Origin: Fimbriosthenelais zetlandica
Taxonomy: Eukaryota
Assembly: GCA_977030845.1 (NCBI GenBank)
Contig: OZ365118.1
Coordinates: 18,476,001 to 18,540,000 of the forward strand
Direction: 5' to 3'
DNA: 64,000 nt
Position numbers and translations under genes: made by a program. This document shows, piece after piece, positions 6,501 to 49,100 of this stretch. The notes under the pieces were generated by a model. That model worked only from the letters and a program-made list of their open reading frames with translations, was not told the origin of the DNA and ran no database searches. Position 1 is the first letter of the stretch. Each line of letters opens with the position of its first letter.

Positions 6501-9500
6501 GATGAGTCTAAAGTTTGTGACGGTTTTGATGATTGCCTTGACAACAGTGATGAATCAGGCACTGGCTGTGGTAAGTCCCTATTTCACAAAAAAAAACATA
6601 TCTTATCTAAGGTTTATCCTTCTCTGTTTATCCCAGTGTTTACTATCTTTCTCATCTTCTTTCAGAATGTGAGCAGTTTCTATGTGACGATGGTCGGTGT
6701 ATATCAGGCTTCCTGGTGAATAACGGCGACCACGACTGTCTGAACGGCGAGGACGAGGGTGTGGGTGAGTACAGCGAGGTGTACAGTCTACCTCAGCCCT
6801 AATCCAACCCCCTACTTACCTGCGTAGCCCTATAAATGCTCTGTATTTATTTCAGTTAATCTAGGCAAAATGAAAACCCCAAACATGGTGGAAGATAAGA
6901 GAGAGACGATGAAGAAGACTAGATTAGAGAAAGATTACATCAACTATACCATACCAGACCTCAGTGGTGAGTGGTTTAGTTTGGCCGCCATCTTGATTCA
7001 GTGACATGTAGACTGTAAACAGTGACTAATGTCTTCCATGATTCCCCTTACAGGACCTCTCACCAAGCAGTTCCTGAGGGACGCTGCTCACAGAAAGGAC
7101 GACTTTATACATGAGTAAGATGGAACAACAGCACACTTTCTCATGATTTCACCATGATGATGCTCTGCCCCTGTATTTGTGGTATTTTGGGCTGTGATAT
7201 ATGCAGTATTTGAATGGTCATTTATGTTTTAGATGTCTGTGGGAGAACCAGCCGTGTGAGGAGGCAGCCATCAGTGAGACCTTTACTGACTATGGTCTCT
7301 GCTACAGCTTTAACAAAGGGAACAACTACAAAGCGAAAAATGCCGGTAAGTGATCCAGTAAATGTGAAACATTGACTATTGTAGCCCACCAGATGTAGAG
7401 TTCTCCATGTCTCTCTCCTGATTTCTATTATTTCCCCTTACAGGAGCACACTCAGGTCTGCGACTCATTCTTAATGTAGAAACTTATGAAGCCATGGAGA
7501 GAATAGAGGCCGTGTCAGGGGTGAAGGTGAGTTATATACTGCTAACAGATTATAGTTATCATTAGTACTTATTATGTTTATCATTATCTATGACTTAGTG
7601 GAAGTGTTAAAGCTTCAGGAGTTGATAAAGACGTTAAATCATAATGAGGAGAGTTTTGTTTTTGTTGAAGGCCCATGTCCATGACCCGGACACCCTACCT
7701 GCGCTAGGTGAGCAGGGGTTCTACCTGGCTACAGGTATGGACTACAGTCTAGAGGTGGATCTCATCAAGGTGAGTGAATTACACCTCCATACACCTGTAC
7801 AGGTGAATTATAGGTAAACCATTGTGTTTTTGCTTTCTTTGTCCAACGTTTCGGGAGACATCGGCCTTCTTCAGGGAATGGCCTATACTATTATTAATGT
7901 TTCTATATCTGATATAGGTGGAACATTTATACTATATTATTAATATATCTAAATCTGTTTGTTTTGTTTTATCAGACTCACAAGTTACACGAGCCCTGGG
8001 GAGACTGTGTAGATGAGCATCCTCTCAGGTTCTATACTCGTTATAACAGACCTAACTGTTTACTGGAATGTTCTACTAACTGGACGTTAGAGATGTGTAA
8101 CTGTACGGCCCCTCACATGCCCACCCCCCGCCACCAGCACGGGTCCTCACTCTGCTCCCTACGACAGTACATGGACTGCTACTTGTTCCTCCGATGTAAG
8201 TATACAGGTCAGCTCATTGCCTACAGTAGATTGAATGACTTGCAAATGCTTCCAGTTCCAATATCAAACCAGTTTTCATTATTGGAAGTGACGCCTTTCG
8301 ACCTTGCAAGAGTGGTAGAAGAAGCTCTTCTTGGTGACAGGTGGCAATAAATTTCGCAAGCAATATTGCAGAAGCCCTTACAATCATGTATATATATAGC
8401 TACTGATATGTAGATATATTATTTCCAGTTTATAACCAAGGCTCCTCCTGTGACTGCCCTGAGACCTGCCATGAGACATATTACGGTAGGAAACTCTCTC
8501 ATGGTAAGCTCGATCTCACGTTTATCAATGATTCTAAGCGACTCCAGAGGAAGGTGAAGCGAGCTGAGATCACAAACGACCTGCGGAACCCTCGACTATA
8601 CTACCATACCCTCAACTCACTCTACAATATCACACGACTACTGCACGGTGTCCTCCAACTCACAGACGGACTCTGGTTCACCCATACCCCGCCCAAATCA
8701 CACAACAGATGGATCTATAACATAGAACTAGGCCTGAAAAAACTCGTCAATATCTATGAAAGGTCTTATACACAAATATATGAGAAGGTGAAAGAACCTC
8801 TGTTATCTAAACTCCAGGATATAGTCATTGTTAAGAAGGACATACTTCTTTATCAGAAAGAACTGATATATTGGGAACATCGGATGCTTCTTTATAAAAG
8901 CCGTGACATTATTGACAAGTCTGTCAATGAGAGTATGAATGGAACAATGTGGAGCAAGGAAGGAACCACAATTATACTTATTGTAAAACAAATATCAGCT
9001 CAATTTGAAGGACTTAAAGATCTCTACCAGAGAAATGTATCTCAAAATGTAGACATCAGTAAGGCATTTGATGGAGTTAAACATGCCTGTGATGTTCTCT
9101 ATGACATTTCTACTCATTCAGAAGATCTAGATCCTTATCAAGTAGAACATCAACTCAAGTCGATCAATGTTGCTGTGAGGGGATTGTTGAGGGTACTCGG
9201 TACAGAGTGTAGTGAGGTGAAGTCTATAGTGAGGAGCCTGGACGACCTTCACCCTGACGTCACAGTCTGGACGTTATTCCGTCAGATGGAGAGACTGAGT
9301 GATGACCTCAGAGTCCGTGAGTTCAGGACCAGCCTGGTCCACCTCAATAAGATGCACCATGAGTTAGTACAGAGCTTCCAGGCCGAGTATGATAAGAAAT
9401 GTCTGGACACAGATCTAATAGACGGCCGGATGCTACCGTTAATGAGGGTGAACATTAAACAAGCCCTCTCACGTATCATCCACCAGTTCCTGGCGCCCTA

Positions 9501-10408
9501 TCAACTACAGCAGATCCACCTGGTGACAAACCTCACTACTAATTATGAAACGCTCATCAGAACGTTACGCAGGATGCGCGGGTTCCTCCCGCAGCGCCTG
9601 TTACACCAGACACTGGTGGGTCTGGAGGTGTGGAAGCGGACGCTGATAGATATCAGCCCTCGTGAGATAACGAGTATTAACCAACTCCAGCCGTACAGCC
9701 GTATAAAGGCGTACGTCATGAAGGATGAGCAGGAGTTAGCTGCGATTATTAATGAACATATGACAGTGTATACTGAACCCATAGTGAGAGCGTTTGAGAC
9801 GTACTGGAGGCAGGTGTACCAGTATGATCATGATCTACAGGTGGTGGATAAAGAGCTGTCGCACATTACCCGAGACTTTATACACAGAGTCACACTTCAC
9901 CAGCAATTCATCAGGTTAGTATAGGGTTACATAGTATCAGTTAGTATATTCTGCATCTTATCTACTTGTCTAAAGGAAGATGTGTTTTTAATGTATATAA
10001 AATGAAATGAATGAGTTGGAAATCATTCATACCTATTGATGAATTTCATGATAACTTTAGGTTTTTATGTTCTCCTTTTAACGTTACATGTTAGTGTTTG
10101 CTGTTATTTCAGTAAGAACTTCGTGAAGCTGGATGTGTATTTTGCATCTCTGAGTCGGTCAGATGTATCAGAAGCAGAAGGTCTCTCCAGGAGTGAACTT
10201 ATCAGTAAGTACCTTGAACATTCACTCATATTCACACCTCACGCCTGGAAACTTAAACCAGGAGTTATTAATGATTGACTGATGATTTATTACAGGCAGT
10301 ATCGGGGGTTTTATGGGACTTCTCATTGGTGGAAGCCTCATCTCAGCCTGTGAAATATTGGATCTCATAATTACTCTGATTATTGGAAAACACTGGGTTA
10401 AACCTTAA
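107..10408 (+). CDS. Chimeric DEG/ENaC (ASIC-like) channel with MAM, LDLa and kringle modules; 5' end outside the window; 30 exons
   Basis: Exons: 107-290, 407-579, 692-799, 991-1230, 1381-1491, 1709-1819, 2050-2382, 2528-2632, 3378-3525, 3612-3706, 3787-3909, 4033-4062, 4148-4381, 4597-4693, 4823-4962, 5077-5262, 5413-5500, 5581-5759, 5993-6343, 6457-6570, 6666-6764, 6856-6966, 7054-7114, 7233-7345, 7444-7526, 7671-7769, 7976-8195, 8429-9914, 10113-10204, 10296-10408. All junctions are GT-AG (one probable GC-AG) and phase-compatible. Total 5627 nt = 2 nt + 1875 codons ending in TAA. Contains kringle NYCRNP, LDLa DxSDE, MAM CxF..MCGY and DEG/ENaC motifs. Confidence 0.88.
692..1491 (+). CDS. 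LDLa-kringle-LDLa modules (exons 692-799, 991-1230, 1381-1491)
   Basis: [21 protein letters not shown]; kringle C..GRGEFYNG...[16 protein letters not shown]...YCPVTRC; [21 protein letters not shown]. Confidence 0.92.
1709..2632 (+). CDS. MAM domain 2 plus LDLa 3 (exons 1709-1819, 2050-2382, 2528-2632)
   Basis: [13 protein letters not shown]...W; HCLGLEF...FQVVFEA...LSQGWC; [25 protein letters not shown]. Confidence 0.85.
1857..2030 (+). mobile_element. tRNA-derived SINE-like fragment in an intron
   Basis: B-box-like GGGTTCAATCCC at 1875-1886 followed by a non-tRNA body; boundaries approximate. Confidence 0.4.
2691..3350. repeat. Fold-back element: 41-bp minisatellite array followed by its inverted copy
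   Basis: Unit ATAGGTCTCTTTCTATACTACTACCCTACATATCCTGGGTT, about 10 copies forward (to 3120) and 5-6 copies inverted (3121-3350). The outer ends GGTCTCTTACAAACCCTGA and TCAGGGTTTGTAAGAGACC are reverse complements. Confidence 0.9.
3378..4962 (+). CDS. Kringle 2, LDLa 4, micro-exon linker, kringle 3, kringle 4
   Basis: [15 protein letters not shown]; [20 protein letters not shown]; [15 protein letters not shown]; divergent [14 protein letters not shown]. Kringles 2 and 4 are each split by a phase-2 intron. Confidence 0.88.
5017..5069. repeat. (CATT)n microsatellite
   Basis: Run of TTCA units just upstream of the 5076 acceptor. Confidence 0.85.
5077..6764 (+). CDS. MAM domain 3 interrupted by kringle 5, then LDLa 5 and LDLa 6
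   Basis: [15 protein letters not shown] (5077-5262); kringle [16 protein letters not shown] (5413-5759); MAM C-part WCLSF...VW..W...[11 protein letters not shown] (5993-6343); two LDLa exons (6457-6570, 6666-6764). Confidence 0.85.
7054..10408 (+). CDS. DEG/ENaC channel core (finger end, palm, thumb, TM2) of the chimeric gene
   Basis: [47 protein letters not shown], ten thumb Cys including [19 protein letters not shown]2 [18 protein letters not shown] with a GxS filter; stop TAA at 10406-10408. Confidence 0.93.
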
Positions 10409-10990: not shown

Positions 10991-11935
10991 CATTGAATGT
11001 AAAAGAAACTATATCTGCCCCTGTTAAAATATTAAAATAGAGTGGGCTGCTTCTGCCTCTACTACTCCCGACCTTGTTTATTTGTCGCTATGACGACCTA
11101 GTGTGAACTCCCCATACCTGGCTTTAGCACATGGTAGTAGAGCAAGTCTGACCCGGGATATAACGGCCTTCACATAGCGTTCACATGTTATATTCAGGTG
11201 TTATAATTACACTACCTGTATATAGCAGGATACCTATATATAGCTCCAAACATTGAATCATCTAAACATTGAATCACACCAGGCTTGGTTAACATTGTGA
11301 ATGAGGACGGTATATACACGGTTTATATGCAGCCATTCATGTGACAAACTGTTGTAGTAACCACCAGGATTCTACAACAGCTGCGAGGCTCGATTTATCT
11401 CTTAATGTGAGGAACGTTGGGATGAGGCAGACCAGGATAGGTTTATATAAACCCTGACGTTTTGCTGTAGTCTAAGGTAAGACTTCTATACATGTAAAGC
11501 CACAGTTTAGTTTTTATATGTAGTTATGTAAAGGATTAAGCCTGCTATGACATAACCCTCTTTATGCTGGGATTATCCTAATTTAACACACGTACAAATC
11601 CACATTATTTTTGTAATGCCCTATTTTTATTATGCCTTTTAATTCACTGTACACCAAATATACCACAAGACTCTGTTCCTCACACTATTTATTATTAATA
11701 GCTGTGTAGAAGATCTATAGAAGATGTGCAGGAGTATTGGATGATAAAGAATAGCTCAATATATGATCAGAGGTATATATAATATTCAAGTCAGGCTCAA
11801 TATTGGAGGTATATCTAATATTGCAGGTAAAGTCAGACTGAATGTTTGATTGAGTTATATATAATATTCAATATAAGGCAAAGGCAAAGTCAGGCTCAAT
11901 ATTTGATTCATTTATATCTAATATTTCAGGTGATA

Positions 11936-14900
11936 ATGGAGGGTAAAGGACTGAAGCTTAAGGACCCTCAGACGTTCCGTATCTTCATCTCCTCCCCGTT
12001 TAACGGGATGGAGAGGGAGCGTGACAGTCTGACCAAGCTGTACTGGCCGAGGTTAGAGTCACTACTGGCCACCAGGGGGCTGAGACTGCGGCTGGTAGAC
12101 ATGAGATGGGGAATCACCCACTCCTCATCTATAGACTCACAAACCATCAATATCTGTCTACGTGAGGTCGACCGCTCCGACTTCTTCATCGGTTTATACG
12201 GACAGAGATACGGCTGGCACGGCACCAACGATGTCAACCTACAGGAGAACTTTGAGAAGGCTAAAGATAAGTTCCCCTGGATACTGAATCACCGGGAGAA
12301 GAGTGTGACCGCTCTGGAGTACTACCATGGACATCTGAACGAGCCGGGTAGACTACCGGCTTGTTTTACATTCCGTCATAAATCATACGATGATCAGATG
12401 TTTATCAAAGCCAGACAAGATGGCGACGCCAAGCGGGAGAAGGCCTTCACTCCTGAGACACAAGAATCAAGTCACCTCCTGAACGACCTCAAACAGAAGG
12501 TCATTCAGACTGAAACTGAGACGTTAGGTTTACTCAATGATTACACTGAGCCAGAAAAGGCAGCTGAGTTCATCTTTGAATCAATCCTGACTTTTGTTAA
12601 AAAGGAAATCTTATCTGCTTCTGCCGAGCCTCCTTCCAAGAAGGAGAAATCGTTATTAGCTCACGAAGTGTACATGAAGAGTAGAGCTGGGAACTACGTT
12701 GGAGGTGAGAGATATATGGAGGAGCTAGACAAGTATGTTCTGGGTGATGATGGCACTAAACCCATTACAGTTATAGGAAAAACTGGCTGTGGTAAATCAG
12801 CTCTCATTGCTAACTGGATCAGTAATATGAGTGGAGACAAGTATAGCAATGTTCTGTGTGTGTATCATCTAGTAGGAGCTGAACCTGACAGCGCATCCAC
12901 TAATAATCTACTGATCAGACTGGTGGAGAACCTCCAACCACATATCCTGGCTGAGGATTTCGACCCTTCAAAAAACAAACTGGGCGATAAGGAACTCCTT
13001 GCTAAACTCCAGGAGTTGTTTAAGAAGTTGAATTCAGCAGAGACGAAGTTTGAGAAGAAGATAGTGATTATTGTAGATAAGGTGGACCATATGAGTGGTG
13101 ATAAGACCAGTAAACCCCTCTACTGGCTGCCACGCTCACTACCCGCACAGATACGGGTAGTTCTCACAGTCACCGCTGGTAATGAGGGCGCTGACGAAAT
13201 ACTAGAAATCCTCGATGAAAATTATCAAACTTTAAAACTAGAAGTGACTGCTATTAATGAACAGGATAAATGGACGCTCTGTCAGTCAATCATGGAGGAA
13301 CATTCTAAATCATTTGACGAGGAACAGCTACATCTGATCATATCCTCACCTAAAACCAACCAGCCCTTCTTCCTCATGGTGCTCATTCAGGAACTGTGTG
13401 TGTCAGGGAGGTTTAGAGAGCTGAGTCAGCAGATCAGAGCTCACCTCGAGGCTGAGGGAGTGACTGGCCTGCTCTGTAATGTGATTAAACGTCTGGAGAC
13501 AGACTATGAGAGTGATGAGATCGGCGGTAAGCTGGCTGAGGACATCCTCTGTGCCATCTGTCTGTGTAGGAAGGGTATCGCCGAGTCGGAACTCCCCATG
13601 CCTCAACACATCTGGGCTCCCTTCATTCACGCTATGGGAAAATATCTCATCAACAAAGGAGGCTTACTTACCTTCTCCTTCCCTGAAATGGCTGAGGCCG
13701 TGGAGAAATTATACATGAACACAGACGAGAAGAAGGGACAGGCAGCGGTCAAGGTGGCCGAGATATTCCTAGTACCTTACAGAAAGATGATCAGGGAAAA
13801 TGCAAAGACGGTTGATAAGAGATTGGTGATGGAACTACCGTACTTACTGAAGAAGAGCGGTAATAAGGCGGAGTTAATGAAGGTGATGAGTGACGTCAGG
13901 GTGTTTAACGTCATGTTCAGCTCAGCTCGCTATGAGCTCAATGACTACTGGCATTATCTAGGTGTCTCATCTGAAGTCATCGCTAGAAAATTACTGAAGA
14001 GTCTCGACTGTTACACGGCTGTGAGGTACTCACAGTTCCTGAGAGACTATAACCAGGATGGTATACAGAAATTAATGAGGTGGAAATCAGGCGTCATCGA
14101 TGACATCAGGATCTGGATGGATGTCATTAAACTGTACCATGGACTGTCACTGATCTATGACAGGGAGATCATGATAGACACCAGACGGTCTGACATCCAG
14201 GGTAGGAAGAAGGAGAATATACTGGTACAGGTGAAGTACTTCAAGGCGTGCTTCCTGTCTGATGTTGAGCAGTACAGAGAAGCTCTGGACCTACATATGG
14301 AGGTAATGAAGGGCAGGGAGAAGCTGATAAAAGAATCAATCATGGAGAAGGAGGACATTGGCATGTCATATCATGGTATAGGACTGTGTTACTATAATCT
14401 TAAAGATTACGACGAGGGTGAGAAATGGTTCCTCAAAGCTCTCGAGGCTCAGAGTGAAGATGACCCAAAAAATGCGTCATCAAATGGTAACACATACTGT
14501 AACCTGGGGTTGATAGAGAACTCACGGGGGAACCTTGATAAAGCCATAGAATACTTTAACAAGTCTAACGCCTTGTGGGAGGATGTCATGCCGGATAAGA
14601 TCTGCCTGGACATCGCCTATAACTACCACAATATGGCGCTGGTTCAGCGGAAGAAGAAGAACTACGATGAGGCAGAGAGGATGTACCTGAAGTCCATGAA
14701 GATGAAGGAGCGCTTGTTGGGGCGCGTATCGTATGATGTCGCCATCACCTTAATGAACCTGGGAACCGTGGAAACATACCGAAAAAATAACGAGAAAAGT
14801 CTAGATTATAATAAACAGTCGCTGGAGATATTTAAAAAGCTGGCGCCAGAGGGCTCTTACCGCACGATGATGGCGGAGGAGAACGTGGTGAACCAACTAA

Positions 14901-15613
14901 CGCTGTTAAAGCGATATGAGGAAGCTGAACCCATGTTCCAGAACGTTCTTAAACACCTGAAGAAAATGGAGGGAGGCTCAGCTAACGGCCTGGCTCCCCT
15001 CCACAGAAGGTTCAGAAACTGGTATGAAGACAACGGGTATAAAGAGAAGGCTCTAGATGTGTCTACAGGACTTGTGACTTGTTCTAAGTGTAAACCGGCT
15101 GACGTAGCTTACCATCTCATCCTGTATGACTCCTCATCCAAGACGACACGCGGACCCTGCCCACATGAAGGCACGTTTGAGTATGGGATGAAGAAATGGC
15201 CGTATAATAGAGACATCCTCATGGCTCATCTCTCTGTACTAGTGGAGGCGGATAAAACACAAGCCATGGACTTTATACAGAAGTATTGTGAGGATGGAGA
15301 GGGAGAGAAGCCCGGGGGAGGGCGCTACTGGCTCCTTGTGGACATCATTCATGAGGAACTCGAGGATTTAGAACTCGCTATTAAAGTCGCTACTCAGGCT
15401 CTCAACTATGATCCAGACAATGACAAACTTAAATGCAAAATGGAGAAGTTAAAAAAGCTCCAAGAGGAGAAGGCAGCTAAAGACAAAATCAAAAATGAGG
15501 AACAGACTAAACAGGAGAATGAAAAGGAAGGGACAAAGGATGAAGAGAAAGCTGGGGAAAACATAGAACAAGAGGAGACAAAGCAAAATGACTCAAAAGA
15601 CACTAACTCATAG
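11936..15613 (+). CDS. DUF4062-like N-terminus + NACHT/STAND NTPase + TPR repeats (nephrocystin-3-like architecture), 1225 aa, single coding exon
   Basis: FRIFISSPF.GMERER...VDMRWGI...ICLREVDRSDFFIGLYGQRYGW (DUF4062 type as in TEP1/NPHP3); Walker A GKTGCGKS; Walker B VIIVDKVD; TPR repeats (SYHGIGLCYY, TYCNLGLI, YHNMALV, TLMNLGTV). ATG at 11936 follows the acceptor TTTCAG at 11929. Confidence 0.9.
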   Translation: MEGKGLKLKDPQTFRIFISSPFNGMERERDSLTKLYWPRLESLLATRGLRLRLVDMRWGITHSSSIDSQTINICLREVDRSDFFIGLYGQRYGWHGTNDVNLQENFEKAKDKFPWILNHREKSVTALEYYHGHLNEPGRLPACFTFRHKSYDDQMFIKARQDGDAKREKAFTPETQESSHLLNDLKQKVIQTETETLGLLNDYTEPEKAAEFIFESILTFVKKEILSASAEPPSKKEKSLLAHEVYMKSRAGNYVGGERYMEELDKYVLGDDGTKPITVIGKTGCGKSALIANWISNMSGDKYSNVLCVYHLVGAEPDSASTNNLLIRLVENLQPHILAEDFDPSKNKLGDKELLAKLQELFKKLNSAETKFEKKIVIIVDKVDHMSGDKTSKPLYWLPRSLPAQIRVVLTVTAGNEGADEILEILDENYQTLKLEVTAINEQDKWTLCQSIMEEHSKSFDEEQLHLIISSPKTNQPFFLMVLIQELCVSGRFRELSQQIRAHLEAEGVTGLLCNVIKRLETDYESDEIGGKLAEDILCAICLCRKGIAESELPMPQHIWAPFIHAMGKYLINKGGLLTFSFPEMAEAVEKLYMNTDEKKGQAAVKVAEIFLVPYRKMIRENAKTVDKRLVMELPYLLKKSGNKAELMKVMSDVRVFNVMFSSARYELNDYWHYLGVSSEVIARKLLKSLDCYTAVRYSQFLRDYNQDGIQKLMRWKSGVIDDIRIWMDVIKLYHGLSLIYDREIMIDTRRSDIQGRKKENILVQVKYFKACFLSDVEQYREALDLHMEVMKGREKLIKESIMEKEDIGMSYHGIGLCYYNLKDYDEGEKWFLKALEAQSEDDPKNASSNGNTYCNLGLIENSRGNLDKAIEYFNKSNALWEDVMPDKICLDIAYNYHNMALVQRKKKNYDEAERMYLKSMKMKERLLGRVSYDVAITLMNLGTVETYRKNNEKSLDYNKQSLEIFKKLAPEGSYRTMMAEENVVNQLTLLKRYEEAEPMFQNVLKHLKKMEGGSANGLAPLHRRFRNWYEDNGYKEKALDVSTGLVTCSKCKPADVAYHLILYDSSSKTTRGPCPHEGTFEYGMKKWPYNRDILMAHLSVLVEADKTQAMDFIQKYCEDGEGEKPGGGRYWLLVDIIHEELEDLELAIKVATQALNYDPDNDKLKCKMEKLKKLQEEKAAKDKIKNEEQTKQENEKEGTKDEEKAGENIEQEETKQNDSKDTNS

Positions 15614-17546: not shown

Positions 17547-19119
17547 ATTATAATAGGTAGTGGAGGGAGATAGCCCCTAATCGACCAAGTGAGGAAATAG
17601 ATTACCACTATCTTAAATCAATAACTTATCGACCAAGTGAGGAAATAGATTACCACTATCTTAAATCAATAACTTATCGACCAAGTGAGGAAATAGATTA
17701 CCACTATCTTAAATCAATAACTTATCGACCAAGTGAGGAAATAGATTACCACTATCTTAAATCAATAACTTATCGACCAAGTGAGGAAATAGATTACCAC
17801 TATCTTAAATCAATAACTTATCGACCAAGTGAGGAAGTGCATGTATAATTTCCTTTATTTTCTTTGCTGTCCAATGTTTATCAGAATTATTCTCATGATT
17901 ATACCATTGATGATAGATCAATGAATAGTTAATCAAACAACCAAACATTTCACGGTTACTCGCAATGAATTTTGTCCGTAATATCACTATCCACTGCTTA
18001 TCCATGCATTCATTTCACGGTTATACTTCAGTTAAACTTTCTAGCTTAGATTATTTATACCCCTCCAGGTGTGCCATACCTAACACACTAGCTGACCATC
18101 ACACTAGTTCACCATCACACTAGCTCACCATCACACTAGCTCACCAATGATGACTTTATTACCACCACCAGTACTGATGGCTAGAAGGTACTGCCTCCAG
18201 AGGTGAAAACTGACCGCTACACTGACCGGCGCCCTCACCTGGCCTCCTTTATACTGGAGATGGTAGAGGAAGTGACCAGTAGATCTAAATACACTAATCC
18301 TATCATTACAATAGTCACTGACCAGTACTGTATCCGCCGGACCCTCACACACCCCCGCCGGGGCCAGTAACTGACCATTACCGGACCCACTGTTACCGAG
18401 TGGCCACGTCTCATCCTTCTCTACATCATGCATTATCAGATTATTGGAGTGGATCGGGTACGTGGTTGTACCCACCAGTACCCCTGACTCGGTCAGGGTA
18501 GTGTACCAGAGATGGGTGCTATCTGTGGTGAGGTGGATGAGAGATATAAAGGTGAGTTGATGGGTGTATATATAATATAGATGATGCTCGTTACAGCTGC
18601 CTATAATGAGGTGATTCATGTTGAAGGCTATAGTACATGGCTGTGACAGGTGTGTGAGCTTGATACGTGTCACATCCCCACTCCCCGTCAGTATGACAGT
18701 ACGTGTGTAGATCCGTACTCGGTTATTATCCGGCTCTGTGACGTATACGTCCCCGCTATACGTGCACGCCAGCCGTACGGCTCTGAACCCGTCCTCTATC
18801 ACCGCCACGCTGCACGCCCTGCTGTCGTTAACCAGTCTGATCTTAATGAGTCGTTTATCGTACGACTGGATGGCGACTAGCGTGTCAAAACTCACCCAGC
18901 ATAAGTCATCTACTGAGCTCTGGTCAGGGCTTGGCTGAGGCACTTCACATTCCATCAGTAGCTTAGCTGAAATCACAAAACGTCGCAACAATAACTACAA
19001 TCAAATCACTTGGTCGATTAGTGGCCATCTCCCGCCACTACCTATTATAATTCATCTAATTTGATGGATATTATCCGTTCTCACTTGGTCGATTAGTGGC
19101 TATCTCCCTCCACTACCTA
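17547..19119. repeat. Inverted repeats flanking the NHL exon
   Basis: 17547-17592 is the reverse complement of 19006-19051 (43/46). 17554-17593 is the reverse complement of 19080-19119 (39/40). Confidence 0.85.
17581..17836. repeat. Perfect 48-bp tandem repeat, 5 full copies plus a partial copy
   Basis: TCGACCAAGTGAGGAAATAGATTACCACTATCTTAAATCAATAACTTA at 17581, 17629, 17677, 17725, 17773; partial at 17821. Confidence 0.95.
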
Positions 19120-34100: not shown

Positions 34101-37100
34101 ATGTCGTTACCATGATCCTCTTGTCCCATATATTCTAGGACTTCCCCCTTGTCTCCCTGTCCGTGTAATATCTCTGTTTCTGTGATACTTTAGGTTTTAG
34201 TATTCAGAAATGGTAACAGGAGGGTTGTTACAATCACGATAATGACTGAACCCCTCTATACCCACAGAACTGACGCTGGACATTCATGATATTAAAACAA
34301 ATATTTTATAATCTTTATTGATGAAATAATCTTTAACATTTTGTCATATATTGATTGTATGTTTTTTGTTGATTTTAAACGGAGATATGTTTATTGATGA
34401 TTATTATTGATGAAATAATCTTTAACATTTTGTCATATATTGATTGTATGTTTTTTGTTGATTTTAAACGGAGATATGTTTAGCAGTACATCTGTGACTT
34501 ATATCTTGTCATGTTATATTTGTAGATACCTGTGGCGGTGCCTGGTCGTTATCTCCTTTGTGTCAGTTATGGTACTCATCATAATCTCTGTTAAGAAGTT
34601 ACTGGAGCCCACTATAACCACCCAGATAGACGTGTCAGTGGAGGAGTCTATAGAGTTCCCGGCTCTCACCATCTGTCCCGATAACCAGTTCCGGCGGTCT
34701 TACGTTAAGTCACATCCGGAGGTGATACGGTTCCTAGAGAACATCTTCCAGAGTCGTGTAGTGGCGGAGACGGAGGAGGAAGCCCGAGCCGCGGCTAACG
34801 TTACCATAGAGTCCATCAACGTCACGCGGCTAGCCATGGAAGCCGCACACACGCTGCCGGAGGTGGTAGCCTACGCTTTCAGCCCGCTACGTTCCGTCAT
34901 TAAGCCGTTTAACTACCACTCGTTCAAGCCGGTCATCACGGAGATTGGGGTCTGTTATACGCTCGTGGATCGCTGGAGTCTCACGGCTCCCGGCATGCAC
35001 TCCGGACTAAAGCTGATCGCAGGAATCGATCCCAGCGAGTACTTCGTGGGTGAAATGACCAGTGGTTCAAAGGCCGTCAAGGTGGGTCAAATATACTCAT
35101 TACTATATTAAATAATGCCAAGTTTATAATACATTATTACATTAAATGATGGGTCAAATATAATACATTAGGCATTTAATCAGGTCAATAGATCAATTAT
35201 CAGTAATTTTACTCAAAGGCTTAGAGATAGAGCCTGAGATTCCAGAGAATTAGGAGAATTGTCATTTTATTGACATTGGAATATATATGGTAAAATAAAG
35301 CAGTTGGTAAGTTTAGCGTGGGCAGGCACCTTATCAGGGCTGTGTGAATCATAGTGATAGACGAGAACTTACCAGGAAACCCCGAATTAACGCCAGTAAA
35401 CACAGTGCCTGGCCCTGTCTCAAGTATTTCTACCTTGGCTTCAGTCCATCCCCGTCTCAAGTTCCCCCTTCATCTCCCTCCCTGTCAAAAACATCCAGAA
35501 ATAACCGCTTCTTATTCCCACAATTTCTTCATCGCACAATTTTATCTCTTTGCACAACCCAGTCCCAATTTAAGCTTCATTTGAATTCAATAGTTTAAAA
35601 TAAAAAGATTTATGTTTGAGTTGGTGAGGGATGTGGTTGGAAGTGGCTGGGGGGTGGGGTGTGAGGTGTTGGGGGAGGGGGAGGGGGTTTGGATCATTCA
35701 TTACCATCTCAGTTCTCTGCCCATTAAGATAGCATGTAAACCACGCCCTGGGGGCTAGTGAAACGGCTCCCTTCTCACACAGACCCCTTCATTAAAGATT
35801 TTATGATGGCCCATGACTCATTTTAATGTCATTTTTAGCCCGACATGTCTGTGATTTATTGTATTAATATATGAAATATTTGATTATAAAATGAATTATT
35901 GTAGCTGGCTATTTGGTAGCATTAACGGGAGGGTTCAGCTGGAGGTTTAATGATCTGAGGGACGCCGTACGGACGCTGAGTAATATCATTTGTCCAGTAA
36001 CCATGACAATTATAAATCTGATTTAATATCACCGTAAATTGTTACGTACTTCAGCCTCAGCTCAATGACAGACATTGAGAGAATGTGAGGTGAAATGACA
36101 GAGAGAGGGAGAGAGAGGATTAGAGGGAGAGGGAATGACAGAGAGATAGGGAGACAGGACAGAGGGAGGGACAGACAGAAGAAGAAAGTTACATATATAA
36201 TAGAGAGAGCTAGGTATAGAGGGAGAGAGATAGAGGGAGAGACAGAAATAGAGAGAAAGAGAGGGAGAGAGAATGAGAGTGGGAAGGAGAGAGGGAGAGA
36301 GAGAATGTGAATTAGGTTGAGAGTTTGAGGTAAAAGCTGTGTTCATTATCTGAGTCGGCGTCTAATTAACCAACAAAGCGCACCAAATCACAACAAATTC
36401 CACGCCAGGTTAGAAAACACTGACATGTTTAAAGTGGCTGTCAAATTTACAGCAAAATTAATTTAGTGGAATAGCCGTGTAGTTGTGGCTGCCAGCTTGA
36501 CGGTGGGCCTTCATGTCATCCCCCGCCTACTGTCCATCTCCTCTCACAACTCACTAATAACATGTCTAATTACAAACTAATTTACAAGGAATTATCACCG
36601 AAAATGTTAAGCTTCCTCTGTAAAAAGTCACAAATGAATTTAACAAATAATATCTTTGCAAACTTTGAATTTTTGCAGTTGTTAAAGACACAAACATAAT
36701 ATCCACAGTAGAAAGGACATTAAGTTGATTATTATAAAAGTAAATGATTGCCCATTAAGTGTCTAGTTTATACCATGCATGGAGCCACCCTATGTCCTAC
36801 ACAGTCTCACGGGCTCTTACAATTACAGCCCCGTGACTTGCCATATAACATCCTGATAAAAAGGGGAAATCCCAGGCCTCTATACAGGTGGTTATAGCGT
36901 GGTTATATAGCAGTGTTAGAACTGATAATTAATTCAGTGTTCCGGCCTCCTAATTAAAACTTTAACATGAAGAAATGAAAGTAAAACTAAAGTAAATATT
37001 TAATGGACATCAGGCAGGAGCGTGATGTCTGAGGCCGCTTAACTGAGAAATCATGTTCGCCTATATTTGTCTTTCTCCCTTCAGAATTAAAAGCAAATTT

Positions 37101-43100: not shown

Positions 43101-46100
43101 TCACATATAGAAGGACCATGAGACGAGGGCTTTACTACGAGTGATGAGACGAGGGCTTTACCACGAGTGATGAGGGCTTCCACTGACCCGTGAGAAGGAT
43201 GGGGCTTCTAGGTCTAATACGAGACACCAAATAATCTACTGTACCCACAACCTAACTCACCCCCCAAATGTACTTTGGTTGCTTTCTATTTTTGAAATTC
43301 ATACTCAATGTCTTTAGACCTTTATATCAGGAGTCAAACGTGAGCAAATTATTTGATTCAATCAATGCTTTAATTACGGACAGATAAGTCTATATACATA
43401 CTTGATTCTTGAATCTTTCTTCACGATTATTTGGACATTTTATTTAACGTTGTGAATGGTATATACCAGTTATTACCTTTGGGATGGTTATTTAGACATC
43501 TACGCAATATTTAGTTTATTTTATTCCTCCTGTGAGAGGGCCAGGTGTTTGAGAAAATCCCTCCTAACACCCTGCAGAGGAGGTGTGTGGAGAGGCCGGG
43601 GGTGGCGCTGTGGTTGGTCTTACCACCACCGCCCGCTGTATGAAGCTGTTAGCCTGGGATGAATGGTCAGCTGGGGTGATGTAAATCTGATTTATCCATC
43701 ACCTCCATCCCCGGTGGTCATTGGTAGCGAGTAGCCTCATCACGGCCTGCTCCTGTCATGGCTATCTTCACCATTAAGTCCAGTAATGTTTGAGATAGCC
43801 GGAGATGGGCGCTTTATGGACTGTTAAACGACTATTATTGTTACCTAGTTTACACATGTCAAATCCACCACCAGCTACGCGGGTTCGAAGCACAGGACGG
43901 ATGTGTGTAGTGGGGGGGGGGGGGGGGGGTAGGTAGTTTAGATAGAACAGACACCGGGGTAGGAGTACTAGTAGAACAGTAGAGCATAAAACCAGTGGAG
44001 TGTGAAGGTAAAAGCTATGTGCCTCTAATATAACCCCCCACCCACTCCGTACTGGGGGGGGGGGGGGGGTGTGTTTGTGTTATGGTGGTGATGAGGCCAA
44101 TCCCTCACCACCACCAGGGGGGGGGGGGGGTTGTGGTAAAACTTGTGGTGGCGTCGAGGCACAGAGCGGGCAATGCTTTCACACCTGTAGCAGAGGCTCG
44201 GTTGGGTCCATTGGAGTGGTGTGGGGGGGGGGGGGGTACTTTAGTTGGAAGTAGTTTGGGGTGGGAGTAACTTGTAGCAGCTTCGAGGCACAGGACGGGT
44301 CTTAGCTTTCACACCTACAGCAGACGCCCCGGCAGACGCTCTGCTGTGTGTCTATAGGAGTGGTGTGGTTGGTGGGAGTTGGGGGGGGGGGGGTAATTTA
44401 CTTAGAACACTCTCCTGGCTATTGGCGACAGAAATAGCTCCGTATACCCTTTGAGGTCTACCTGGAGCCATGACAAGCTTCAGCCTATATCTGTACTTTG
44501 GCCTGTATTTATAAATGTAAGTTTGACTGTTTTAACAGTACGAGCATTCCGCCTGAGTGCACAGGGAGAGGAAGATGGAGATCTGAGGAGCAAACATAAT
44601 GTAAACACTGGGATTATTTTATATAAGAACATCATCCTTCACGGCAGTTTGAGGTGAGATGTATAGCAATAAGAGTGGAGCCAATTTGTGCTCCATTAGG
44701 AGCCTCAAGCTCCCAGAGTGCTTCTCACTAGTTGTCATCTGTGTAGGAACTCTATAGTAATTTACACCTTCATAATATTCACCCTCCCTCACAAAAAATA
44801 ACATACTCCAAGCTGCCACTGATTGCTCCTTTAGACGTAATGAAACAAAAAGCTTTATACGGAAGGAAACATCAGTGAAAAAGTACTTTTAATAGGTCTC
44901 TAGATGCCCCATAACCTCGCCTACTCTTGTTCATTACCCCTATATTTATTTATTTTTTATTGTCTATTTTCAGGACTCTTTCCTGTTGCTAATGTCCTCA
45001 CTATTTATTGTTTTTTAGAATATCTACTCTTACTAATGTCTGCACTATTTAATTATTTTTTATTGTTTTTTTTTGTAGAATATCTACTCGTCACTGTCGG
45101 GGTGTATAGACACAGACTCGCCGGAGTTCCGGAACCCGCTGGATTTTTACGCTAATTACAGTCGTGAGGCGTGTAGGATGGAGTGTATGGTGAAGGATAT
45201 TAGTAATTACTGCGGCTGTAAACACTACTACTGGCCCGGTAAGCCTTTAATATACATTATACACGCATTTGGTGATATCTGTCCAGACCGGGATTCGAAC
45301 CCACGTCTCTGGCATCCCAGGCCTGTTGCATCCCGCTGTTGACTTTAGCCTAAATCTGTGAGATACAGAAGTGATTATCAATTTGACGGGGATGGATGGA
45401 TGGTGGGAGGGAGGGAGAGAAAGAGGGAGGGCTGAAAGAGATGATTTAATTAGGCAGGAAACTTTACTAATTTAACTAAAATGATTTAGTAAACATTAGG
45501 CTAGGATCAAGGATTACCAATTGGATCATATTACAGATGCACGTGAGCTAATTATGCTTCTAATTAGCATAATCTGACTCATTAAAAATAAGTCCTCTAA
45601 TGATCTGATGTCGGACTGCTAATTATCTTCAAACTTCCCGTTTGATTAAAGTGATATTAGAAAGTCAAGAGTTAAAAATCAGTTCTCTAATTAAGGTAAA
45701 CTTTGTATTAAGTGATATTTTAATGTGAGGTGGCGGCGTCCCACTGACCTAATTAACCTGGATCATCTCACCGCTGTATCCATGGAAACATGGCCGATCA
45801 ACGTCACCATGGTGACCGGAAGTTGTACAAGTCTGCGTGTTTCCGGTTTGTGGTGTCGCCCAGCTCCCTTGATGTTGAGGCTAACTGAGGCTAACCCAGG
45901 CCAGCCCAGTCTGACTCAGACTGGCTGAGGGAATTTATAGATCTCCGTGTTACTAATTGGAGAATTTAGATTTTAATTTTGTGTAATAAGGAAAATATAT
46001 TACATCATTATTGACGGGAACGTGGTCGACCTGCCGTCACTAGCATTTATATTTACTCTGATTAAAATAGCCAACAAATATTTATTAAAGTCAGGACANN

Positions 46101-49100
46101 NNNNNNNNNNNNNNNNNNNNNNNNNNNNNNNNNNNNNNNNNNNNNNNNNNNNNNNNNNNNNNNNNNNNNNNNNNNNNNNNNNNNNNNNNNNNNNNNNNNN
46201 NNNNNNNNNNNNNNNNNNNNNNNNNNNNNNNNNNNNNNNNNNNNNNNNNNNNNNNNNNNNNNNNNNNNNNNNNNNNNNNNNNNCCTCTTCAACACCTTTT
46301 CCTGTTTTTCCTCAGCTTCCCCCTCTCCCCTATCCTTTCCCTTCCCCCTTTCCTTCACCTTCGTCCCCCTGTAACCCCACCCCAAACAATCCACTATGTT
46401 AAAGTTGTCTTAGTTGATTCTGTAAACTCCTTCTGTCTTTCTCCTCTCTCTCATTGTCTTTAGTTTAATCCCCTCACCACTTGCCAGTCTCTTTCTTCCC
46501 GCCTTTTCCCTTCATTCCATTAAATGTCGTGTTTTATTCCGCCTGCTTTATCTACAGTAATCAGATGATGATAATCTGGTTGAGAGGGACTTGTTCTCAC
46601 TCCGTCTCTAATGCTTTAAACATGTTTTATAATTCACTGTTAAAATAACTAACAAGATGGCGGCTCACTCTGACTCTGCCGACCTCCTTTAACTCAGTCA
46701 TAATCAAAGTCTGCTCAAAGTATCGTCTCAGTTTAATTTTATCTCTTGTGACTATTTTTCGACCTTGGATCAGATAGACCTGAGAAGATCCGGCAATCCG
46801 GATCTGCGGGTGGCTCCTGTTCTCGTGTGTGGCTTCTGGGGTCTTGTGTGTGGCTTCTGGCCTGGCTATTTGTGGCTTCATGTAGGACAATACATCCCTT
46901 GTCTCTGTCTCTCTCTGTCTCACTTTGTCTCAGTCTCTCTGTCTCTGTCTCTCCCTCAGTGTCTCTGCCTCACCTCGTCCCTGTCTCTCTGACTCACTTT
47001 GTCTCTCTGTGTCTCTCTTTCTCTGTCTCTCTGTCTCCCCCTCAGTGTCTCTGTCTCACCTTGTCTCTAGCTATCTCCCTCTGTCTCTGTCTCTTACCTA
47101 GTCTGAATGTGATTCATGTCAACAATTATAAAAACAGTGAAAATATGGCCCGCTCTTCCTCTTTTGACCCAGTTTTTACCGCTCCTTCTTATTTCATTGC
47201 CTTAATTATCAATTAGGTCTGTTTTAATGATTGTACTCATTAGTACCCGCCTGTATTTACGTTTTAATTCCTGTTATGTCATCTTTTTAACTCGTGTTTT
47301 AGTCCGCCTAATGTGGGAACCCACATTTTCATCATGTAAAACTGTGACAATTTTTTTTTATCTTTATCCCAAATAGTCTCACAATCCCAAACTTGTGGCT
47401 GTTCTTGTCTGTCTCCAACGCATGACAAAAGGCTCTACAGCTGAACAAAGCAGCACTGCTTGCTGGTCCCCAGAGCCCTCTCTCCCTCCCCTTCATGCTC
47501 TTCCTCTTTCCCTCCCTTCCTGCCCTGCCCAAGAGCCCTACCCCATCCTCTAGGCCTTCCCCAAGGCCAAGGTCTGTTCAAGGTCAAGAACATACACAGA
47601 GGTCAAGGTGAACTTCCGGGTGAATCGATGACTTCCTGTTAAGATAATAAGAATACTAGCCTAGCTAGATCTTGATTATATTAAAGCCTATTGTACAAAG
47701 CTTCTGCCTCCCGTTTTACAGATTCATTTATTGTCCTAGTATATTTCTGGTCTGAGGATATTATCAAACTTTGCTCTTTCGATTCCCGTTTTCGACTTTG
47801 AATTGCCGACCTTTCCAATACATTCCATGATTTTATTGTTCCTCTATTCCTGGCCCTCGTAAAAGTCAGAATTTTAATGTGTAAGAACTATAGGAAGAAT
47901 CAATTCGCGAAATCCAAATGTCAGTAAAAAAAATGTCACTATTATTATTCACTTGAAAGGAACTCTCGGAGTGAGGGGAATGTAAGACGAACCCATTAAA
48001 TGAATCTTGACAGGACGTAGGAGGGATATCTGCGCCCTAAGCTTCCGCACACTGGGAATGAATTATTTAATTAAATTACATGATAGGGCGGATGAGTATT
48101 TGTATAAAGCAATTATTGAGCAGGGGGCGACTGTGTGATGAAGGCTTCCTACCCTAATACCCATCTTTGTGAGCCATTCCTTATATTAAACCCCAAACCC
48201 CATGTTTTTCAGCCATTCCCCTTATTACACAACCCCCACCCCCATTCTTAGCCATTCCCCGCATCAAACCCCTCCCTACCTTGATTCCCCCTTTAGCCAT
48301 TCCTTCTATTACCCCCACCCCCATTCCTGATAGTCACCCCTCGGTGATTATGGCAGCCATGTTTATTCCCGCTATCATGTGACTTTCCTCCGTTTCTCGC
48401 GGGATCTGACGTGATCTCGGGGCTCTTCTCGTTGCCGCGGGTTCTCCTATTATTGCCCGTGACTTTTACTCGTCTTTATGTCCCTACTTCCTCCCATTCA
48501 CCATCATTGTTCTTACCGGCAAACTTCAGCATTTCTGCCTCTAATATTCTGTGTTTTTGCGTCCATTAAGATGGGAATTGTAGCTCCTTTACCTCCTCCT
48601 TTACTGCCTCGTAAATACATGTATGCTGAATGAAAATAAATGGAAATGAGGCCACAAACAGAACTTGGAGAAGAGAAAGCCATTATTATTACAATGTTGA
48701 GATGTGGATATGTCCTTTAATTTCATTATAATTAGTATATGTTAACCTCCACTTGCATCTCGATTATAATTAGTGATTTTATTTTACAGGTGACTTCAAG
48801 ATTTGTAAATACGAGCGGGAGTACCGGTGTGTGAAGGAGAGAATGTTAGGTGAGTCAGCATTTACCTTCATTAAATAGTGCTTCACCTCACCTGGGTTTG
48901 TGCTCTACCTGGTCTACCTGGCTCCATCTATAATATATACCTCACCATGATGGGAGATCCCCCTGTTTCTAGATCTGGTCATCTGTATTTTTGCCTGTTT
49001 TATTAATCCTGTATAGTCTAGGTAGGGTTGTAGACTTGTATAAATTAAAGCTGTATACATATTTAGAGTTGTTACCGTATACATGTATATATAGACCTGT

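Follow-up and report, generated by a model that had tools for sequence, protein, structure and literature searches.

A single large exon encodes a predicted helical rod in the knuckle of a DEG/ENaC channel subfamily

The stretch of DNA analysed here, G000:C37:18476001-18540000 (the window, 64,000 nucleotides; positions below are counted from its first letter unless a contig is named), is part of a 447-Mb animal genome (G000). On its plus strand, from the window start to about 10400, lie the 3' two thirds of a multi-exon gene of the DEG/ENaC channel family (Pfam ASC). One exon of this gene, at 8429-9914, places 469 residues in the knuckle, between the thumb and the strands that lead to the second transmembrane helix (TM2). 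The question raised by this locus is whether such an exon truly belongs to the channel and, if so, what the inserted part contributes. Taken as a whole, the results are best explained, with a probability of roughly 0.6, by a conserved extracellular domain of a DEG/ENaC subfamily, termed the knuckle rod, which acts as a rigid arm that passes signals. The parts of this explanation differ in strength. That the domain is real is very probable; the rigid-arm mechanism, as against a passive scaffold, is a tentative proposal by analogy, at somewhat less than even odds.

The exon at 8429-9914 is genuine and is read in the frame of the channel. A first-pass annotation had described a knuckle insertion of about 465 residues within one exon of 1,486 nt. 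This agrees well with the 469 residues found, the canonical splice sites, and phases that fit both flanking exons. On entry, the T at 8195 and the first two bases of the exon at 8429 form one codon, followed by 494 sense codons from 8431. On exit, the exon ends with CAG/GTTAGT at 9914, and its AG together with the T at 10113 (acceptor ...tttcag/T) encodes Ser, after which beta11 begins. The order read is thus CDCPETC, YYGRKLSHG, the insert, beta11-beta12 and TM2, which is the usual end of a channel of this family. Given the window's own stop-codon frequency (0.060), a frame of this length would stay open by chance with a probability of about 5e-14 per start, and the opposite strand carries only short open reading frames (ORFs) at this place. 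A chance ORF was rejected for the rod exon, as was a tandem repeat, none being found within it. The rod exon had also been said to exceed every other exon of the gene more than fourfold in size, which fits the ORF list, where not every exon is modelled.

Membership of the DEG/ENaC family is indicated by the profile score together with the thumb motif, beta10, beta11-beta12 and the TM2 filter, all read from the DNA. Pfam ASC (PF00858) matched the thumb exon with 48.8 bits against a cut-off of 23.6 over profile positions 273-336, and a second, weak match covered residues 3-76 of the rod exon, a part that includes the beta10-like strand. Among PDB sequences, ppk/ASIC chains matched the thumb exon best (E value 1e-6), a resemblance of the thumb. 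Furthermore, a genome search for ASC exons located the exon on the side of the first transmembrane helix (TM1) at C37:18469861-18470046, about 6 kb ahead of the window. The strand names beta10 and beta11-beta12 are assigned by comparison with ASIC1. The start of a paralogue's rod exon (thumb end and beta10) and the beta11 exon of the window gave no match to PDB sequences, these pieces being too short, and the strand assignment therefore rests on motifs.

By homology, the insert characterises an entire subfamily and is not peculiar to the gene in the window, a point that had been missed in the earlier annotation. The genome was searched in six frames with the 469-residue insert as query, and with profiles A1 and A2 built from the homologues. 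In the single-sequence search, a paralogue on contig 25 was matched at E 9e-21, with 21% identity over residues 23-457, in a 526-aa open frame that begins with the thumb motif CGCPEQC; a beta11 exon (RKNFLTVDFF) and a TM2 exon come after it. The profiles revealed about 18 further loci in this genome, each with a homologous block of 400-600 aa in the same place, mostly in a single exon and in a few genes interrupted by one or more introns. With A2, the window exon scored 2e-153, and 27 other matches, representing these loci, were found at E 0.01 or less. Their open frames range from 378 to 1,103 aa. At their start, the full-length frames carry the thumb motif and beta10, and in most the end is (D/N)xF(V/I/F)(K/R), right before GT. 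All genome matches were at the knuckle position, and no free-standing copy of the rod was seen outside DEG/ENaC genes.

Outside this genome, an exhaustive phmmer search against 1.84 billion representatives returned only four clusters (E 4e-24 to 1e-4), all from other assemblies. Three of the four representatives begin at or near the thumb motif C-x-C-P-x2-C, and all four reach D/N/Q-x-F-I/V-R, either at the end or before a short read-through tail, implying that each is this same exon, annotated on its contig as an ORF of its own. The gene that contains one of them, L003, has its LDLa, thumb, beta11 and TM2 exons arranged in matching order. A search of metagenome contigs with a single rod protein found no relative. 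The subfamily thus spans about twenty genes of this genome as well as other assemblies. Its aligned members are 11-24% identical (alignments A1 and A2), with W401, R403, L405, E442, H443 and E449 as invariant columns in A1. The window exon carries the landmarks of the subfamily, namely C220 and C260, W401-K-R403 before a hairpin, E442-H443...E449-P450, and QQFI followed by AG/GT. These landmarks, together with full-length homology between beta10 and beta11, assign the window gene to the knuckle-rod subfamily.

The distribution of the copies bears on another reading, in which the block is a separate nested gene or mobile element that lies by accident in one of the channel's introns. That the block is long, lacks introns in a gene otherwise rich in them and matches no known domain might suggest as much. 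However, the thumb motif and beta10 lie in the same exon with no stop or splice site between them and the block, the end of the block is in phase with beta11, every copy in the genome is at the same DEG/ENaC position, and repeats and transposon domains are absent. Both forms of this reading, nested gene and transposon, were rejected, their probability being practically negligible.

Several further features of the subfamily were observed. At L039 (G000:C1:62003928-62007179), the rod exon lies inside a 1,103-aa frame that runs on into a Ser/Thr-rich, mucin-like tract, which would make a rod with a heavily O-glycosylated extension. Two rod genes stand in tandem 9 kb apart (G000:C11:27036488-27038119 and C11:27045057-27047906), and an intron of about 1.2 kb splits the rod in the second only; this pair would let intron gain or loss in the rod block be dated. 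Ordinary channels coexist with the rod-bearing ones, with at least 17 full-length ASC matches in single uninterrupted ORFs of 522-624 aa, mostly on C13. These form a numerous group of ordinary DEG/ENaC genes without introns, next to the rod-bearing genes, which are rich in them.

Selection on the rod could be analysed in a relative, through L003 and L048 (ENA ERZ25767047; contigs of 3.05 Mb and 0.47 Mb), whose 98-99% identical copies are haplotypes or a recent duplicate. The identity of 98-99% holds in the exon and the upstream intron, and falls to only about 91% downstream, amid repeats. Within the rod exon, 14 of 486 codons differ, 9 by synonymous and 5 by non-synonymous changes. The ratio of non-synonymous to synonymous rates (dN/dS) is 0.15, with a binomial p of 6e-4 against neutrality on these small counts. 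The rod is under purifying selection in this relative, which agrees with the roughly twenty frames kept open at such low identity. These results also bear on the suggestion that the exon is optional, most of it being removed as an exitron or skipped in the main transcript, so that a short knuckle would result. A GGTAAG at 8503-8508, inside the rod exon directly after beta10, could serve as the donor. Nevertheless, it is out of phase with the acceptor of the next exon at 10112/10113 and the paralogues have no donor at that place. Homology and open frames are moreover full-length in about twenty copies, and the low dN/dS argues in the same direction. Such removal is very unlikely.

The character of the inserted part was examined from its composition, its predicted fold and its conservation. 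Three Cys (exon residues 220, 260 and 324), six sequons (NDS, NIT, NES, NGT, NVS and NLT) and an RKVKR motif near the insert start are all present in the translation, as had been listed. The composition, described as rich in Leu, Ile, Gln and Glu, comprises 13% Leu, 8% Ile, 7% each of Arg and Val, and 6% each of Gln and Glu, and is thus rich in Leu and Ile. AlphaFold2 modelled the window exon from a 6-sequence alignment with a mean predicted local distance difference test (pLDDT) of 76.2 and a predicted template-modelling score (pTM) of 0.68. The model has helices at residues 29-47, 54-81, 94-156, 163-202, 207-229, 235-272, 295-318, 326-380 and 433-487, of which helix 94-156 comprises 63 residues, about 95 Å if straight. 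A beta hairpin is placed at 402-419, and the last helix runs into beta11. For a paralogue on contig 19, only 15% identical to the window exon, an 18-sequence alignment gave pLDDT 81.6 and pTM 0.71 with the same order of elements. Both models are all-helical apart from the one hairpin. The insert is therein predicted, with fair confidence from shallow alignments, to be an elongated all-helical bundle, as the first-pass annotation had supposed. Its alternative, a coiled coil, found no support as an association between subunits in the monomer models, which pack the helices inside one chain. In VIA-align, rows over residues 57-485 on small four-helix bundles place the first and last long helices in one bundle, the arrangement required of an inserted domain, and residues 121-270 form a second, generic four-helix bundle.

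Conservation peaks at residues 1-60, 281-320, 401-460 and 481-494 and is lowest at 121-260, a pattern that, on the aligned sequences, describes a base that is conserved and a tip that varies. Of the 12 members that cover that part, 11 have a Cys pair with a spacing of 40-74 residues, and each member has 3-8 sequons. DEG/ENaC topology itself puts the knuckle region outside the cell. The conserved Cys pair and the sequons are marks of an extracellular domain, the character proposed at the outset, and fit one that is glycosylated and, probably, disulfide-bonded.

The RKVKR motif had led to the proposal of convertase cleavage, whereby an auto-inhibitory or regulatory piece would be cut by a proprotein convertase, as the finger tracts of ENaC are by furin. 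A dibasic K-R does stand near the insert start, and one report (PMC8791634) describes activation of ENaC by cleavage at polybasic sites. However, the site reads K-V-K-R, with Lys instead of Arg at position P4, and does not conform to R-x-K/R-R. It lies in a stretch of low model confidence and occurs in none of the aligned homologues. A single cut would leave the rod joined to beta11, and the ENaC sites are in the finger, not in the knuckle. Since the site is non-canonical and unique to the window gene, cleavage there is held to be most improbable.

Comparison with databases indicates whether the domain is known elsewhere. No Pfam family covers the insert in 18 members, the window exon giving only a weak Vinculin match (E 0.022). 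A profile search of the PDB with the insert yielded no channel: designed bundles alone appeared, at E 0.004 or worse, and no DEG/ENaC chain at E below 1. Foldseek against the PDB (best E 9e-3, TM-score below 0.2) and the ESM Atlas, searched by fold and by features, yielded nothing specific, only generic helical proteins such as dynein tail and chemoreceptors at low recognition. Among the 48,161 chains compared by VIA-align, the matches were all common four-helix bundles with Z 12 or less. The structure prediction and Foldseek search that had been proposed for the insert alone did produce, beside the helical models, a match among cluster representatives of AFDB. This is K1PHY3, "Amiloride-sensitive cation channel 4-B" (678 aa), which we take from the style of its accession to be an oyster protein. 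It was matched with probability 1.00 by both models, in first rank for the paralogue and in eighth for the window exon, and is the only structural match that bears a name. R7T5W4, an unnamed entry of 654 aa that is presumably from a polychaete, again by accession style, was matched with probability 0.97. Residues 122/142-602 of K1PHY3 superpose on both rod models (TM-scores 0.41 and 0.36), and about 76 residues follow, enough for beta11-beta12 and TM2. However, the identity is only 11-12%, owing to which phmmer missed it, and K1PHY3 is itself a prediction, made for a gene model whose name was assigned automatically. No literature citing it was found. The rod domain exists in public proteomes, unnamed. 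In full-text literature, including a family review, a phylogeny and the FaNaC structure, no description of a knuckle insert was found, with thin coverage of subscription journals; provisionally, the rod domain is undescribed.

In the structures of ASIC, ENaC and FaNaC, the knuckle tops the trimer beside the finger of the neighbouring subunit, and the ectodomain is linked to TM2 through beta10 and beta11-beta12, which are strands of the palm. In an ordinary channel, beta10 leads to alpha6, and alpha7 to beta11. Here, the first helix would be prolonged, followed by about 450 residues of long antiparallel helices and a 55-residue last helix that returns to beta11. Three rods would then stand outside the cell on top of the trimer, each beside the finger of its neighbour and welded at both ends to the palm strands that drive the gate. 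A rigid arm of this kind would pass pull or binding to the pore from the matrix, the glycocalyx or the gene's own array of MAM, LDLa and kringle domains. Of the rod itself, the conserved base would rest against the body of the channel and the fast-evolving tip would contact partners. Two published results make a signalling role plausible and favour the rigid arm. In alphaENaC, matrix-dependent activation by shear force reportedly requires N-glycans of the palm and knuckle (PMC6955349), and in FaNaC, knuckle alpha6 helps to form the peptide pocket as one wall of it (PMC11026163).

The same architecture would also suit a passive structural module, a canopy or spacer that serves trimer stability, assembly, the choice of heteromers or the propping of the finger array, the last of which the first-pass annotation had suggested as scaffolding, and passes no signal to the gate. 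The window gene has a MAM-LDLa-kringle array in its ectodomain and two other rod-bearing paralogues likewise have LDLa and kringle exons; a conserved base with a drifting remainder is what a scaffold would show. Knuckle deletions in ENaC subunits affect surface expression. On the other side, in the rod-bearing paralogue C11:5851504 the 6.9 kb that precede the beta-ball exon show neither an LDLa nor a kringle motif, so that the rod is probably not just a prop for the array, as far as a single gene can tell. Moreover, a 470-residue domain kept in about twenty genes would be costly for a mere spacer, and the prediction of a complex of two insert copies yielded no oligomer interface, with a score of 0.00. 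A purely passive role is therefore unlikely, though it is the strongest of the alternatives weighed here.

Several points weigh against the rigid arm as well. The two-copy prediction may be listed among them, although with its own fold below pLDDT 50 it is evidence neither way. Tethering and gating rest on analogy, and the length of the rod and its orientation on the trimer are estimates from models. The net charge and surface of the paralogues vary widely (isoelectric points of 5.0 to 8.8), which could equally mean weak constraint on the surface. The exon model 8429-9914 itself is read from genomic sequence. A more specific form of the rigid arm would make the rod a built-in extracellular gating tether, a stiff lever on beta10 and beta11 through which movement of the matrix or cuticle opens the pore. 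This is distinctly doubtful. If true, a lophotrochozoan DEG/ENaC subfamily would consist of self-contained mechanoreceptor channels, and the tether model would gain a defined protein part.

The stimuli that gate DEG/ENaC channels differ widely (protons, peptides, force and proteases) and act through additions to a common ectodomain. To our knowledge, all studied additions lie in the finger and thumb, and the knuckle has been treated as small and static. The rod would be a new module, a conserved helical knuckle domain of 470-600 residues that about twenty genes of a single animal carry and that K1PHY3, an annotated channel probably from another phylum, matches structurally. It sits where work on ENaC puts the matrix tether and work on FaNaC the edge of the ligand pocket. 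Its presence or removal would provide a defined construct for tethered gating, and a profile of it would correct many truncated gene models.

The features of the channel gene are collected in Table 1. Just downstream of it, at 11846-15613 (plus strand), an intronless ORF of 1,255 aa combines DUF4062, a P-loop NTPase of the nephrocystin-3 type and many TPR, and looks STAND-type. A 286-aa open frame at 18131-18991 (minus strand) has an NHL repeat match. A second, conventional DEG/ENaC gene (34524-35042, 45133-45237 and about 59483, plus strand) covers 25 kb or more and encloses a run of N (46099-46283). Its knuckle had been noted as short, in agreement with its exon at about 59483, where ...SYEVRVSS is followed by 27 residues to a stop.

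Table 1. Exons and protein elements of the rod-bearing DEG/ENaC gene, in window coordinates
Feature	Position	Strand	Evidence and remarks
Thumb exon	7976-8195	+	ends in ...YLFLR; donor GTAAGT at 8196-8201; ASC match
Rod exon, 1,486 nt: thumb end, beta10 and entire knuckle insert	8429-9914	+	acceptor AG at 8427-8428 (...tttccag); donor GT at 9915-9916
CDCPETC, final Cys-rich thumb motif	8449-8469	+	translation; C-x-C-x3-C starts the homologous exon in most paralogues
Beta10-like strand (including YYGRKLSHG)	8473-8511	+	placed after the thumb motif; paralogues have ..YETQLSYASLS here
Knuckle rod insert, 469 residues (exon residues 26-494)	8506-9912	+	homologues; predicted all-alpha by AlphaFold2
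RKVKR basic motif (exon residues 40-44)	8548-8562	+	translation; low model confidence
Variable central part (residues 121-272)	8791-9246	+	least conserved; modelled as an up-down four-helix bundle
Cys220 (9088-9090) and Cys260 (9208-9210)	9088-9210	+	in adjoining predicted helices 207-229 and 235-272; putative disulfide
Conserved C-terminal module (residues 295-487)	9313-9891	+	predicted helices 295-318, 326-380 and 433-487; W-K-R at 9631-9639; predicted beta hairpin at 9634-9687
Beta11-beta12 exon	10113-10204	+	first codon, Ser, completed across the splice; donor GTAAGT at 10205-10210; counterpart after the insert in L002 and L003
TM2 exon with G-G-S filter motif	10296-10400	+	counterparts in L002 and L003

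Three known systems may be compared with the rod. The helical bundles of talin, vinculin, alpha-catenin and FAT type resemble it in fold, residues 121-270 superposing on them at Z 10-12 with a root-mean-square deviation of 2.5-3 Å. However, those bundles are cytoplasmic and have no sequence relation to the rod, and the scores are within the range of any helical bundle. A second comparison is offered by other additions to the ectodomain, namely the GRIP and inhibitory tracts of ENaC and the extracellular regulatory and neurotoxin-like domains of nematode degenerins. Like the rod, these are lineage-specific and belong to the outer part of the channel, where they tune gating; unlike it, they occupy the finger region, are far smaller and do not form bundles of long helices. 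The third is the knuckle of ASIC1, ENaC and FaNaC itself, formed by alpha6 and alpha7. Its position in the chain is that of the rod, and it likewise begins with a helix directly behind beta10 and closes with one that runs on to beta11, but it comprises about 20 residues, compared with the 469 of the rod in the window.

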